Assembly: GCA_965637545.1 (NCBI GenBank) | Contig: OZ281501.1 | Span: forward strand, 15,190,001 to 15,254,000 | Direction: 5' to 3' | Length of the DNA stretch: 64,000 bases | Origin: Phallusia mammillata | Lineage: Eukaryota | Shown here: positions 1,320-16,054 of the stretch, piece by piece | How positions within the stretch are numbered: position 1 is the first letter of the stretch | Layout: every line of letters starts with the position of its first letter | Made by a program: the position numbers and the translations under genes | The notes under the pieces: generated by a model | What the model was told of the DNA's origin: nothing | Database searches by the model: none | Seen by the model: the letters and a program-made list of their open reading frames with translations, nothing else

Positions 1320-1622
1320 ATGGCTACTAAAATGGACACTATTATTTCTGCCCTCGACCGTGACGAACTCGATCACGTGATGGCGGTGCTCAACCGTGAC
1401 CGAGGCTTGCGTGACCGGGACCAGGAGAGGTTGGTTCGACTCAGAATGGACCTGGTCCGGGAAAAACGCAATGGGGCTTTAGTCGTGGGGCAGAATTATC
1501 ACCGCGACCCAAATTCTCGCTGCGCGCGTTGCCTGGGTGCTTTGGACCTATACGACCGGTGGGATAAACAAAAGGCGAGATGTTTTCTATGCAAACATCT
1601 CATCTGCAAAAAGTGTCGTGTT
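1320..1622 (+). other. N-terminal half of Slp-homology (RabBD/FYVE_2-type) domain: SHD1 helix plus first three CxxC pairs
   Basis: [31 protein letters not shown] matches the SHD1 pattern of Slp/Slac2/rabphilin proteins. It is followed by C68xxC71, C88xxC91 and C96xxC99. Confidence 0.85.
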
Positions 1623-13600: not shown

Positions 13601-16054
13601 ACTTTTCGGCCCCTAAATTTGGCAAGACATCAAGAATATATAAAATACAATTAAGAACAAAAATTATAACTGATTGAGATTATAGTACCGTGTTTTGTTG
13701 TAAATTTGTTATATTTTAACAGGTTATCAGGCCTTTCTCCCTTCTCTGGTGACGCTGACTCGGAAACGCTTTCCAACATTACTGCAGTTAAATGGGATTT
13801 CGATGATGAAGCCTTTGACCAAATATCCAATGACGCTAAGGACTTTATCAGTCACTTGCTCGTCAAGTCTCTGAAGTAAGTCTTATAACTTATCACGATT
13901 CAATTACAAATGATTTTTTGAGGTTGGCAGAAACACATTTTGTGTTTTCGTAGATTTTTGTGTGGCATGGTTTGATGTTTTTTAACAGGCCTAAAAAGTT
14001 TAAGAATTATGATTTTAAATCACATTCAGTACCTTTCACAAGAATTGCAGTTCTAATTAACAGTAAATCGGTAAATTAGAACCGCAATTCTTGTGAAAGG
14101 TACTGCATGTGTTGGTTTTTACAACGGGTTTTGATTTTCAAGCTTTTGTGGGTACAAAAAATCGTTTATTGAAACATGCGCAGTTAAAGTTTTAGTTTGA
14201 ATTAACAGAAACCGGTACAACGTGGACAAGGCTTTGCAGCACAAATGGCTCAAGAACGACCTGAAGCAGATGTCGAAAAGCAAGTTGAATACCAAAAACC
14301 TGAAGAGATTTTTAGCTCGTCGGAAGTGGCAGGTATAACTTACTAAAGCCACAATCTTTCAAATGTGTGTAGGGCCGCGCATCAAGTCATCATTTTGTGA
14401 CTGCAAAGCATAACAATGGTGTGTCCACGTTTATAACTGTAACAAGATCTTAGGATACAACCTCAGACCACGAAACTATCTTACTTTATATGTAAAACGT
14501 TGGGGTTGTTCATTCATAGGTTTACTTTAACCTAATCTAAGTTTGTTTGTGTATAAGAACCTTTTGCTTAAGCAATCGTACAGATACCTGAAAAACAAAA
14601 CATGTCCTTGCAGTAAGTGTTTTTATAATTTTCATTCACATTTAAGTCTTTTTTGAAGTTATCACTACAATTTGTACACAGAAAACTGGCAACGCTGTCC
14701 GAGCCCTGGGTCGTCTTGCATCACTCGCTCGTTTGCCAACCTCGAACTCTGGCGCCTCCAACGGTCAAAGAGAGTCAGGATTTTTGTCCGCTCTCAAAGC
14801 CCAACTTGTGCGTGAGAAGGAAAGCGAACAGGTAGACTTCATATTTCTTCACAACTAGCATAAATGTAATTGCCGATCTGAATATAAAACTTTTCTATTT
14901 GAATAAGGAGTGAGGATGTCAATATAGCGGCGAAATCGATTTTAATTTCAAAATAAGAAATTGCATTGCATAAGAAATACGTTGACTAATTTAAATTTGT
15001 ACCGAAAGTTGAGTATGCTAATCTGAAGTTTAGTTATAAGTTATGGGACATAATGCCTTTTTTTGTAAATTTAAGTAACAAATGGTTAAATCTTACTTAA
15101 TTGTGCTGAAATAATATTAACGACCAAATATGATAGCAATTTCGTATGATAACTCATATGTAGGATTTCTAGTGCCTAATGGTTTATCGGCAGCGGTGAG
15201 TTTTGAACTGATGTCTGTATCTCACATAAGTTTATGGTTTACACAAAAAGTTCTACACTTTACTACAAACCCTTCACAGGCCCCGGGGAAACGCAAACCT
15301 GAGTTTGTTCAAACTTTTGACGATGTCGAGGTGGTAGAAGGTTCAGCTGCAAAGTTTGAATGCACTGTTACAGGTGTTCCCGACCCCGAGATCATCTGGT
15401 ACATTGACGGAGATCCCATCAAGCAATCCCGGCACTTTAGGTAACTTTGCTTTGTTCTTAGATCTTTTTACTGCATTTCATCACACAGAATTTTTAAGCT
15501 TAACTTTAATAAGAGTTTGATAACTAAGTGTATTTTGTCAATATTTCACTGAACGTATGTGATTTGACGTTCAAAAAGTCTACATAGCACTGCACAAGTT
15601 GTGTTAAAGCTAAACCTTTTTTTATTTACTATATTGTACACCGAGTAATCTATATCGATGATGGGGGAAAGAATTGAATTGATTTTTTATCCCTAGAGAA
15701 ATAATCCAAATTTTTTTTTTTAATTATACTTTTACGTACCTTCAAAATCATAACCACCTTGCAACACCTTTTAAATAGTATTGAGATGCGACCTAAAAAT
15801 TCAAGTTAACTATTAATACCCATATACTTACATATACATTTTTTGATTTACAACACCAGAAGGAATAAACCTGAAAAACTAACAAGTAACTTCTAAACAT
15901 TGTCAGGATCTCATATACCGAAGACGACGTGTGCACACTTCTGATAACAGAAGCCGGTGAACACGACGAAGCAGAATATACTTGCAAAGCCATGAACAGC
16001 GAAGGAGCGGTGGAACACAGCGCTGAACTCACCGTTATCATGCCAGGTGTATGA
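1320..16054 (+). CDS. MYLK: Myosin light chain kinase (MYLK/smMLCK-like) with N-terminal Slp-homology Rab-binding domain; 16 coding exons, about 1737 aa
   Basis: Exons: 1320-4464, 5030-5223, 5669-5822, 6885-7012, 7468-7574, 7822-7934, 10385-10475, 10855-11058, 12363-12483, 12982-13098, 13293-13396, 13723-13875, 14209-14332, 14682-14831, 15280-15440, 15907-16054. All junctions are GT-AG, phases match and the total is 5214 nt. Motifs: Ig ([11 protein letters not shown]), FN3 ([12 protein letters not shown]), kinase ([47 protein letters not shown]), [17 protein letters not shown] and a telokin-like Ig ([13 protein letters not shown]). The exon 1 to exon 2 join uses a weak donor (CAG|GTCGAT) and is the least certain junction. 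Confidence 0.9.
4011..4070 (+). other. C-terminal half of the Slp-homology domain: last CxxC pair plus SHD2 (SGDWF)
   Basis: [20 protein letters not shown] (residues 898-917) matches the W-x-C-x-V-C...(S/T)GxWF signature that closes Slp-family Rab-binding domains. Confidence 0.8.
7111..7240 (+). mobile_element. Second copy of the hammerhead-bearing Penelope-related repeat, core mutated
   Basis: CUGGUGA-A-GGCGACC-UGUAUC-GGACGUC-GAAACGUC at 7137-7172, then a tail (CCAGCATAGCTCTATAAACTTGATATTATGCC) similar to 44402-44433. It is preceded by an inverted partial copy (TTTTACTCCGACGTTTTGAC). Confidence 0.6.
8177..8783. repeat. Tandem duplication, 2 x about 300 bp, in MLCK intron 6
   Basis: TGTCTAACGCTGGTTTG at 8181 and 8481. 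Shared blocks (GGTCAAGAAAGAGTGCT, CCTCCTGAAGTTTGACCCCAAA, CTGTACTGACTAAAGTACA, ACCCCTTAAACCCCCAAATA) occur in the same order. Confidence 0.9.
8790..9120 (+). repeat. Interspersed repeat copy related to 61740-62010
   Basis: Shared colinear blocks AAATACAAG.CC.AATGTGCTGAA, TTTACAGCC.ATAATATGTGTACACTG and TTAGAAATCA.CT..TTTTGC. Confidence 0.6.
10150..10171 (+). CDS. Candidate alternative first coding micro-exon (MTSTETI) for a kinase-first MLCK isoform
   Basis: ATG ACC AGC ACT GAA ACT ATA G|GTAAGT has a consensus donor in phase 1, which matches the phase-1 acceptor at 10385. Confidence 0.5.
10385..14332 (+). other. MLCK-family CAMK kinase domain and autoinhibitory segment (exons 7-13)
   Basis: The Gly loop GQGRFG, catalytic Lys (AAKIM), [14 protein letters not shown] and DMWSVG are all intact. 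The following [13 protein letters not shown] is the pseudosubstrate region. Confidence 0.95.
11793..12109. mobile_element. hAT (Charlie-like) MITE
   Basis: TIRs CAGTTGTTTTAAACCT / AGGTTGAGAACCACTT, with an 8-bp target duplication TTCTAATG / TTCTAATC (7 of 8 identical). Confidence 0.75.
14315..14717 (+). other. Calmodulin-binding motif ARRKWQ|[12 protein letters not shown], split by an intron
   Basis: Near-identical to the vertebrate smooth-muscle MLCK CaM-binding peptide. Confidence 0.9.
15130..15195 (+). CDS. Candidate alternative first coding exon for a telokin-like isoform
   Basis: ATG at 15130 opens 22 codons to GCG|GTGAGT (phase 0), followed by an 84-nt intron to the phase-0 acceptor at 15280. 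Confidence 0.4.

Follow-up and report, generated by a model that had tools for sequence, protein, structure and literature searches.

Secretory granules are tethered to myosin V/VII and actin by Rab27/Rab3 effectors of the Slp/Slac2 family, and myosin II and myosin light chain kinase (MLCK) help to expel or transport them. To our knowledge, the Rab-effector and MLCK/myosin II systems have so far been connected only via separate proteins. Among the effectors, melanophilin (Slac2-a) and MyRIP (Slac2-c) link Rab-marked organelles to the actomyosin system. They have an N-terminal Slp-homology domain (SHD), with SHD1, a zinc finger, and SHD2 in uninterrupted succession, followed by a long disordered region, and they serve as adaptors that bring in myosin Va/VIIa and also bind actin, without a catalytic domain. 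Rabphilin-3A, Noc2, and Slp4/granuphilin have an eight-Cys finger and a W-x-C-x-x-C...SG(A/D)WF segment, with a short loop between the third and fourth Cys pairs, and carry C2 domains or nothing past the SHD. On the kinase side, vertebrate MYLK encodes Ig, FN3, kinase, autoinhibitory/calmodulin site, and telokin Ig in this order, and several isoforms arise from internal promoters of the one gene. Its N-termini target actin via DFRxxL repeats and extra Ig domains; we know of no vertebrate MYLK N-terminus with a Rab-binding domain. LRRK2 and LRRK1 are protein kinases that are brought to membranes by GTP-Rab.

We studied a locus in a window of 64,000 nucleotides of the ascidian Phallusia mammillata (the whole stretch of DNA that was analysed). 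The stretch covers the 3' portion of a complex locus of the MYLK type, in which 1320-4464 is a dedicated first exon. The best explanation of the data, which we consider probable, is that this Rab-domain first exon is spliced to the MLCK exons to produce a Rab-recruited Ca2+/calmodulin kinase isoform. The product resembles melanophilin and MyRIP in its N-terminal SHD1-zinc finger-SHD2 arrangement and long disordered region, and the parallel to their role at Rab-marked organelles is drawn from sequence. It differs from them in that its C-terminal half is a complete MLCK with a predicted Ca2+/calmodulin regulation, and in that its SHD is split by ~800 aa. It shares the eight-Cys finger and the W-x-C-x-x-C segment with rabphilin-3A, Noc2, and Slp4/granuphilin, but neither their short loop nor their C-terminal organisation. 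The domain order is that of vertebrate MYLK and the calmodulin-binding segment is nearly identical, whereas the DFRxxL repeats are missing: none was found in exon 1, in agreement with an earlier note on this DNA, and none across the 1737-aa isoform. The LRRK proteins are a functional analogue only, with no homology: their Rab-binding region (armadillo/ankyrin) is unrelated, the kinase belongs to another family, and Rabs are its substrates.

The gene model (Table 1) has 16 exons, all its introns are GT-AG, and the spliced sequence reads as a single frame of 1737 aa. Pfam searches on single exons, combined with the spliced model, give the order Ig, FN3, kinase, regulatory segment, and C-terminal Ig (telokin). 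The top PDB matches of the kinase exon are twitchin and MYLK4, and the catalytic motifs ([19 protein letters not shown] and DFG) are intact. Exons 7 to 13 carry the kinase domain and the autoinhibitory segment and end with the first half of an RS20-type calmodulin site (ARRKWQ, 14315-14332), whose second half is identical to the smooth-muscle MLCK peptide (5JQA_B) at 12 of the 15 positions. The exons of the telokin-like Ig match Pfam I-set with E-values of 9e-13 and 7e-9.

Table 1. Features of the locus, in window coordinates.
Feature	Position	Strand	Description
TATA-like TATTTAA	1189..1195	+	~30-40 nt ahead of first transcribed bases observed; candidate promoter element
5' leader of the Rab-domain isoform	1233..1319	+	in-frame TAA 1260-1262; 12-codon uORF
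Exon 1, first coding exon	1320..4464	+	aa 1-1048 plus one base; full span in X1 contig
SHD1 helix (aa 14-51) and first six zinc-finger Cys	1359..1616	+	Pfam FYVE_2 profile positions 2-89 of 118
Insert in zinc finger, ~797 aa	1620..4010	+	Ser/Glu/Lys-rich, predicted disordered
Four NPF motifs (aa 340, 369, 394, 423)	2337..2594	+	candidate EH-domain ligands
Conserved short helix RFLMMAG (aa 491-497)	within 2778-2813	+	inside insert
Last zinc-finger pair W898-x-C900-x-x-C903 and SHD2 SGDWF (aa 913-917)	4011..4070	+	FYVE_2 profile positions 93-114
Conserved amphipathic helix ahead of donor (aa 1035-1046)	4422..4457	+	AF2 helix, pLDDT ~75
Intron 1	4465..5029	+	565 nt, GT..AG, phase 1; absent from X1 and X2 contigs
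Exons 2 (5030-5223) and 3 (5669-5822)	5030..5822	+	one I-set Ig, Pfam
Exons 4-6 (6885-7012, 7468-7574, 7822-7934)	6885..7934	+	fn3 (Pfam) and acidic linker; exon model
Exons 7-13 (10385-10475, 10855-11058, 12363-12483, 12982-13098, 13293-13396, 13723-13875, 14209-14332)	10385..14332	+	Pfam Pkinase
Exon 14	14682..14831	+	second half of calmodulin-binding site ([15 protein letters not shown], 14682-14726) and linker
Exons 15 (15280-15440) and 16 (15907-16054)	15280..16054	+	C-terminal telokin-like I-set Ig; TGA 16052-16054
G/GT, 6 nt upstream of stop	16046..16048	+	inferred end of all four RNA contigs

Exon 1 lies in an open reading frame of 1051 codons (1320-4475, + strand) that, if read through the donor, stops 11 nt past it (4473-4475). 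We consider it the first coding exon because the RNA contigs start at 1233 (run X2) and 1252 (run X1), with no loose end upstream, and because the in-frame TAA of the leader precedes the ATG, which has a good Kozak context. The exon encodes a predicted Rab-binding domain of the Slp-homology type that is split by the disordered insert. The frame matches Pfam FYVE_2 with 49.6 bits (E 5.5e-13; cut-off 27.2 bits), and the two pieces of the domain occupy complementary positions of the profile. Residues 9-100 align to melanophilin, the best PDB match of this SHD (2ZET_C, E 1.1e-7), and also to Slp4, and the distal piece aligns to residues 96-118 of rabphilin-3A (1ZBD_B). A search of the exon-1 frame for the Pfam Rab_eff_C domain detected none. 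Judged by its sequence, the N-terminus of exon 1 is a Rab-binding domain of the melanophilin/Slp4/rabphilin type and a predicted binder. The earlier note had placed a Slp-homology domain in this exon. The assignment stands, but the domain is not a compact, contiguous SHD of ~120 aa: its last CxxC and SHD2 lie ~800 residues away from the rest.

The conservation of the domain was analysed in nine sequences, the window species and eight relatives. The four CxxC pairs that provide the eight zinc ligands (C68/71, C88/91, C96/99, C900/903) are invariant despite an overall identity of 20-31% across the nine species, as are W898, G914, W916, and F917; the columns of the first six Cys are invariant in 9 to 15 sequences. 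SHD2 motifs of the (S/T)(G/L)xW(F/Y)2 class make contact with the Rab CDRs (PMC9308819). SGDWFK of the window species has Lys in place of the second aromatic, and TGDWFF, SGDWFY, TGDWFH, and TGNWFH are among the versions in the relatives; the S/T-G-x-W-F core is kept and the last aromatic varies. We modelled the whole exon-1 protein with AF2 from a 15-row alignment and compared the model using VIA-align and Foldseek against the PDB. The SHD1 helix (14-51), which shows the acidic/Arg pattern conserved in such domains, has a pLDDT above 90 and the zinc finger one of ~65; the values of finger and SHD2 together are moderate (61-72), and the two pieces may or may not pack together. Foldseek places 2ZET_C first, with an E-value of 3.7 and with the long SHD1 helix dominating the matches. 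The nearest ESM Atlas clusters are Spire-like, Noc2, and MyRIP, with scores of at most 0.85, and serve as leads only.

The gap between C99 and W898 measures 797-799 aa in the window species and 600-870 aa in the relatives. Hence, a cross-braced zinc finger can accommodate a loop of 600-870 residues without losing any of its ligands. The NPF motifs of the insert exceed the expectation from shuffled sequences (4 observed, 0.08 expected), and similar clusters are found in just two of the eight relatives. All relatives have the block of the helix that precedes the donor, [KR]x[ST][IV][SA]E..L...VPG.

The RNA evidence comes from assembled Logan contigs of four runs whose type (RNA) was guessed; we regard the runs as cDNA because the introns are removed. 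In run X1, a contig of 5,274 nt is composed of 1252-4464, 5030-5223, 5669-5822, and another 1,713 nt, and run X2 has a contig of 3,236 nt with identical joints, both of them GT..AG in the two runs. By sequence inspection, the donor (G/GT, 4464/4465) and the acceptor (AG/A, 5029/5030) are in phase 1, and in the spliced model the codon across the joint is GAA (..IVP-E-PPPDS..). The contigs have zero depth across 1-1200 and in both introns, and the interior of intron 1 has no depth in any run. The second joint (5223/5669) is present in all four runs, and in all of them contigs reach 1,713 nt past 5822. This is the summed length of the model exons 4-16 up to 16046, which is why we placed the contig end there. 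The loose end past 5822 reads the start of exon 4; the kinase part of the X1 contig is deduced from the length match and the first 30 nt past 5822. The join of exon 1 to the Ig exon was observed in two samples of a single study (X1 and X2). The spliced fusion mRNA exists, and we hold this to be almost certain. It realises what the earlier note had read from the DNA, an in-frame, phase-1 junction (4464 to 5030) between the Slp-homology exon and the Ig-FN3-kinase-calmodulin site-telokin exons.

Runs X5 and X12, from two other studies, provide a different picture of the 5' end: the Ig exon is preceded by another, non-coding upstream exon, and the coverage of exon 1 is thin and in pieces. The Rab-domain exon is an alternative first exon, and its product one isoform among others. 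The earlier note had said that its proposal would fall if no spliced reads joined the two exons and a different exon fed the MLCK exons. Half of this came true, because the Ig exon has another upstream exon in X5 and X12; the spliced join is nonetheless present in X1 and X2. The 29-nt alternative 5' sequence, a 29-mer found nowhere in the window, was considered as a spliced leader and set aside: it is unlike the ascidian leader, which we take to be 16 nt long and which the window lacks.

The eight relatives are unnamed open reading frame calls on eukaryotic contigs, and the look-up of their protein clusters returned no name for any member. In all eight, the similarity ends at ..VPG, at a CAG/GT-type (G/GT) donor, past which their tails are unrelated to one another. 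Ig exons follow downstream on the same strand in five (L001, L003, L004, L005, and L006). In L003, the Ig, FN3, and first kinase exons lie within 3.3 kb, and in L006 the complete Ig-FN3-kinase-Ig set lies within 7 kb. Phase-1 acceptors leading to EP(P/S).. were found in four species. The closest relative (L007) has no Ig exon in the 4.6 kb downstream, and its intron may be longer than the DNA examined. L008, from a metagenome scan, has 44% identity, the same as the P0001 group, and its downstream DNA is too short for the Ig-exon check. Compared at the genomic level, other species share the order of the exons and the splice phase, and the fusion is very probably a conserved protein isoform.

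No annotated fusion of an SHD with MLCK was found in a scan of 1.84 billion representative proteins for relatives of this particular SHD, and we found no description of the pairing in the literature. When word-indexed protein sets were queried with the first 135 aa or with the family profile, the sole additions were distant FYVE_2/C2 proteins of Hydra. The earlier note had called the architecture unfamiliar from characterised proteins and had thought that unannotated invertebrate examples might exist; the eight relatives are unnamed, with Ig exons following in five.

The isoform could work as follows. A GTP-bound secretory Rab (of the Rab27/Rab3/Rab8 class) on a vesicle or granule would bind the reassembled SHD, made up of the SHD1 helix, a double zinc finger (eight Cys) whose last loop holds ~800 disordered residues with four NPF motifs, and the SGDWF of SHD2, and the kinase would be tethered to the membrane. 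Upon a rise in Ca2+, calmodulin would load on the [20 protein letters not shown] segment and release the autoinhibition, and the kinase would phosphorylate the regulatory light chain of nearby myosin II. Contraction of actomyosin would then be triggered where a membrane bears the Rab, and not along actin filaments. For the Rab-dependent recruitment of the kinase, predicted from the domain, we see the chances as evenly balanced. If the mechanism is true, a single polypeptide reads a Rab and activates myosin II upon a Ca2+ signal, a direct and testable link by which vesicle identity could be tied directly to local myosin II activation, and the predicted protein would be the first Slp-homology effector with an enzymatic output that our searches brought up. 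We propose tentatively, as somewhat less than an even prospect, that it represents an unrecognised class of Rab effectors that are themselves kinases, in ascidians and possibly other animals, in which myosin II on secretory or cortical vesicles would fire only when Rab-GTP and Ca2+ come together and in which the finger would fold round a loop of ~800 aa with docking motifs (NPF, RFLxMAG). Injection and imaging of eggs and embryos are routine in this ascidian, which makes localisation and exon-specific knock-down practical.

Three other readings of the data have to be weighed. The use of Logan contigs in place of raw reads, and the guessed run type, invite the thought that the assembly produced the joined contig as an artefact (a de Bruijn chimera), or that it stems from a processed DNA copy instead of an mRNA. 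This is barely credible, however, given that in two samples each of the two joints coincides exactly with a canonical GT..AG site in the phase predicted, that 0.83 of the query's words are present, which matches its exonic fraction, that the introns and the upstream DNA are at zero depth, and that other species have the same splice design. The closure of the frame just beyond the donor, and the thin or broken coverage of exon 1 in X5 and X12, where another exon precedes the Ig exon, could also mean that exon 1 is for the most part a Slac2-like gene of its own, nested in the locus and with a 1051-aa product, and that transcripts running through the locus yield the join to MLCK as a minor by-product. 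We regard this as very unlikely: no contig in the four runs passes 4464 into the intron, the X1 contig has even depth from exon 1 to 16046 (its far end inferred by length), conservation ends exactly at the donor in all relatives while the tails are unrelated, and Ig exons lie downstream in five species.

The remaining reading accepts the fusion protein as real and holds that the split SHD no longer binds Rab, so that exon 1 would be a long disordered scaffold that targets the kinase otherwise, through NPF motifs that engage EH-domain endocytic proteins, the RFLxMAG helix, or the C-terminal helix. The size of the insertion inside the zinc finger fits this view, as do the SGDWFK of the window species in place of two aromatics, the NPF clusters far above chance in three species, and the other conserved short helices in the insert. 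Yet nine divergent sequences all keep the eight zinc ligands, the G-x-W-F motif, and the Trp ahead of the last CxxC, an invariance that would be difficult to account for if the SHD were not folded and functional, and NPF is missing from six of the nine sequences and is therefore not the conserved function. Hence, we think a non-binding scaffold unlikely and retain the Rab-recruited kinase isoform as the favoured reading.

Some minor features concern the ends of the transcript. The uORF of the leader starts with an ATG at 1274 and stops at 1310-1312. An AG at 1222-1223 makes spliced-leader trans-splicing an origin of the 5' end as possible as the TATA-like element. At the other end, the G/GT at 16046 is probably an alternative phase-1 donor into downstream Ig-rich exons.

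The first exon of the gene carries a single open frame of 1,051 codons whose composition differs from that of its flanks (GC 0.46 and AT skew 0.19 over 2001–4000). Its product matches the Pfam family FYVE_2, the Slp/rabphilin Rab-binding zinc finger, with 49.6 bits (cut-off, 27.2 bits), and the match falls into two stretches. Residues 9–100 hold the N-terminal helix (SHD1) of the Slp-homology domain (SHD) and the cysteine pairs C68/71, C88/91, and C96/99; they align with melanophilin as bound to Rab27B in 2ZET (E = 1.1e-7), and also with Slp4. The remainder of the SHD, including the SHD2 motif, lies about 800 residues further towards the C-terminus, where [23 protein letters not shown] (W898 to F917) aligns with residues 96–118 of rabphilin-3A in 1ZBD_B. 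The two pieces are complementary in the FYVE_2 profile, occupying positions 2–89 and 93–114. The insert that separates them is 797 aa long, Ser/Glu/Lys-rich, and predicted to be disordered, and it contains four NPF motifs against 0.08 expected, a cluster that suggests possible EH-domain partners. Two short helices, one within the insert and one immediately 5' of the splice donor, are conserved in most of nine species (see the table).

The earlier note had described this exon as joined in frame to the exons of a myosin light chain kinase (MLCK). Donor, acceptor, and open frame agree on a phase-1 join, which reads ..KIVP-E-PPPDS.. and leads into an I-set Ig domain. We modelled the remaining exons from frame and splice sites. 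The resulting model has 16 exons, in which every intron is GT-AG, and encodes 1,737 aa in one open frame. Pfam searches, exon by exon, identified I-set, fn3, Pkinase, and I-set domains, consistent with the Ig-FN3-kinase-CaM site-telokin order initially described. The kinase exon has its best matches in twitchin and MYLK4, and the motifs [19 protein letters not shown] and DFG are preserved. For ARRKWQ/[15 protein letters not shown], the match is the smooth-muscle MLCK peptide that binds calmodulin in 5JQA. A motif scan found no DFRxxL in exon 1, as had been stated. The splice sites, the exon model, and the domain matches thus show that the initial description was accurate to the base.

Coordinates of the features discussed (window positions)
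Feature	Position	Strand	Basis or remark
TATTTAA	1189–1195	+	Sequence; fits exon 1's own promoter
Upstream TAA	1260–1262	+	In frame with the main ATG
Short uORF	1274–1312	+	5' leader; 12 codons, out of frame with the main ATG
Exon 1 open frame	ATG 1320 to TGA 4473–4475	+
RFLxMAG(V) helix	2778–2813	+	Within the insert
Basic-[ST]-[IV]-[SA]-E..L...VPG helix	4422–4457	+	Immediately 5' of the donor
Exon 1 donor	4464/4465	+	CAG/GT, 11 nt 5' of the ORF stop
Ig exon acceptor	5029/5030	+	AG, phase 1
MLCK stop	16052–16054	+
Ig-like exons (many)	18109–52000	+	Same strand as MLCK
Long acidic exons	40039–40965, 41768–42679	+	Sequence
PH-like exons	about 50384–51287	+	Sequence
Sushi/CCP-type ORF pieces	54500–54772, 59831–60136	+	Cysteine and tryptophan pattern

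The join is present in RNA. The search of sequencing runs identified 15 runs of one organism that contain the stretch or part of it, and in three of them (X1–X3) 0.83 of the sampled words were present, close to the fraction of the query that is exonic. We aligned the contigs of four runs from three studies to positions 1–6000. A 5,274-nt contig of X1 covers 1252–4464, skips 565 nt (GT..AG), covers 5030–5223, skips another 445 nt, covers 5669–5822, and extends for a further 1,713 nt, beginning with the first 30 nt of the FN3 exon. The same joints occur in a 3,236-nt contig of X2, and a second contig of that run begins at 1233. Depth is zero over 1–1200 and within both introns, and the contigs are therefore spliced cDNA. 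The length of 1,713 nt equals the summed exons 4–16 of the model, ending at 16046, which supports the 16-exon model. From this length, with the alignment covering 1–6000, we infer that the X1 contig connects the Rab-domain exon with the kinase and telokin-Ig exons.

The Rab-domain form is one of several isoforms, and its share varies between data sets. No loose end extends 5' of the contig starts at 1233 and 1252, and an in-frame stop precedes the ATG, so exon 1 is the first coding exon. A transcript start near 1233 would fit a promoter of its own with the TATTTAA element, and an AG at 1222–1223 would equally allow spliced-leader trans-splicing. Vertebrate MYLK has internal promoters. The earlier note had held that its claim would fail if no reads made the join and another exon fed the Ig exon: the join is seen in X1 and X2, and another upstream exon does exist. 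The runs X5 and X12, which come from two further studies, show a 2,091-nt contig in which the Ig exon follows 29 nt not present in the window. Read in the Ig frame, this 29-nt segment ends with a TGA right before the junction, and this upstream exon is therefore non-coding; the first in-frame Met afterwards is in the FN3 exon. Exon 1 coverage in these two runs is thin and fragmented, contig depth being an unreliable measure of isoform share.

Is the fusion particular to this genome? An exhaustive phmmer search of 1.84 billion representative proteins gave 14 matches in total at E = 1e-3 or better. Eight of them (P0001–P0008, 737–1,150 aa) have the full exon 1 design: SHD1 at the extreme N-terminus, six cysteines, an insert of 600–870 aa, W-x-C-x-x-C..(S/T/N)G(D/E/N)WF, and a conserved terminal block ending in ..VPG. 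Each of the eight is an unnamed ORF call from a eukaryotic contig of an ENA or Logan assembly; going by host, it is a reasonable guess that the relatives' contigs come from other ascidians. None of the eight contains a kinase, because ORF callers end at the read-through stop. They share 20–31% overall identity with the window protein, yet none of the sequences departs from it at the zinc ligands or at W898, G914, W916, or F917. The NPF cluster occurs in only 3 of 9 sequences and is therefore a lineage feature, not a core function.

Similarity stops exactly at the Gly codon that bears the donor. In the window and in the relatives' loci L001, L002, L003, L005, and L006, this donor is CAG/GT or a close variant; L004 (about 5830–5850) is the sole locus without CAG/GT at the conserved Gly, where it has CAG/GC, or else uses a GT in a different phase, five bases further on. 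Downstream on the same strand there are one or more Ig exons in L001, L004, and L005. In L003, a span of 3.3 kb includes Ig and FN3 exons and the first of the kinase exons, and in L006 the full set to the telokin Ig lies within 7 kb. Phase-1 acceptors yielding EP(P/S).. are found in four species. For the closest relative, L007, the 4.6 kb of DNA further 3' show no Ig exon. The shared design, donor, and downstream exons thus indicate an inherited gene design, not an accident of a single genome. L001 also has telokin-like Ig exons (7877–8189, +) on the strand of its Rab-domain exon and about 1.8 kb 5' of it, which fits the idea that in this relative, too, the exon is part of a longer Ig-rich gene of MYLK type.

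The results show that the mRNA exists, that the MLCK module is intact, and that the split SHD is conserved. In the mechanism proposed, the SHD would bind a GTP-bound Rab of the Rab27/Rab3/Rab8 class, in the manner of its SHD relatives, and this would put the kinase on Rab-marked vesicles, not on actin filaments; Ca2+/calmodulin would free the kinase from autoinhibition, and the light chain of myosin II would then be phosphorylated locally. Contact with the Rab-specific CDRs is made by the (S/T)(G/L)xW(F/Y)2 element (PMC9308819). Against Rab binding stand the insertion in the zinc finger, the Lys that replaces the second aromatic of SHD2 in the window species, and an AF2 model of the exon 1 protein in which the finger and SHD2 reach no more than moderate confidence and from which fold searches did not demonstrate reassembly of the two pieces.

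Literature searches on MLCK with a Slp homology domain, a Rab-binding domain, ascidians and Rab27, and Phallusia found no such protein described; a Ciona study lists Mylk, without a Rab domain (PMC7397655). No annotated protein related to the exon 1 SHD has a kinase in searches limited to relatives of this domain, and a FYVE_2-kinase fusion unrelated to it may exist elsewhere. We class the architecture as an MLCK body that bears a Slac2-like head for Rab binding, in which both parts are of known kinds and the combination would be new.

By length and exon model (aligned to 5822), we infer that all four RNA contigs end at 16046, a G/GT 6 nt before the MLCK stop. Such an end resembles a branching of the graph at an alternative donor of phase 1, from which some transcripts may continue into downstream Ig-rich exons. 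The Ig-like, acidic, and PH-like exons suggest a candidate obscurin-like gene with a RhoGEF module directly 3' of MLCK, and the Sushi/CCP-like ORF pieces are probably a separate gene at the window end.
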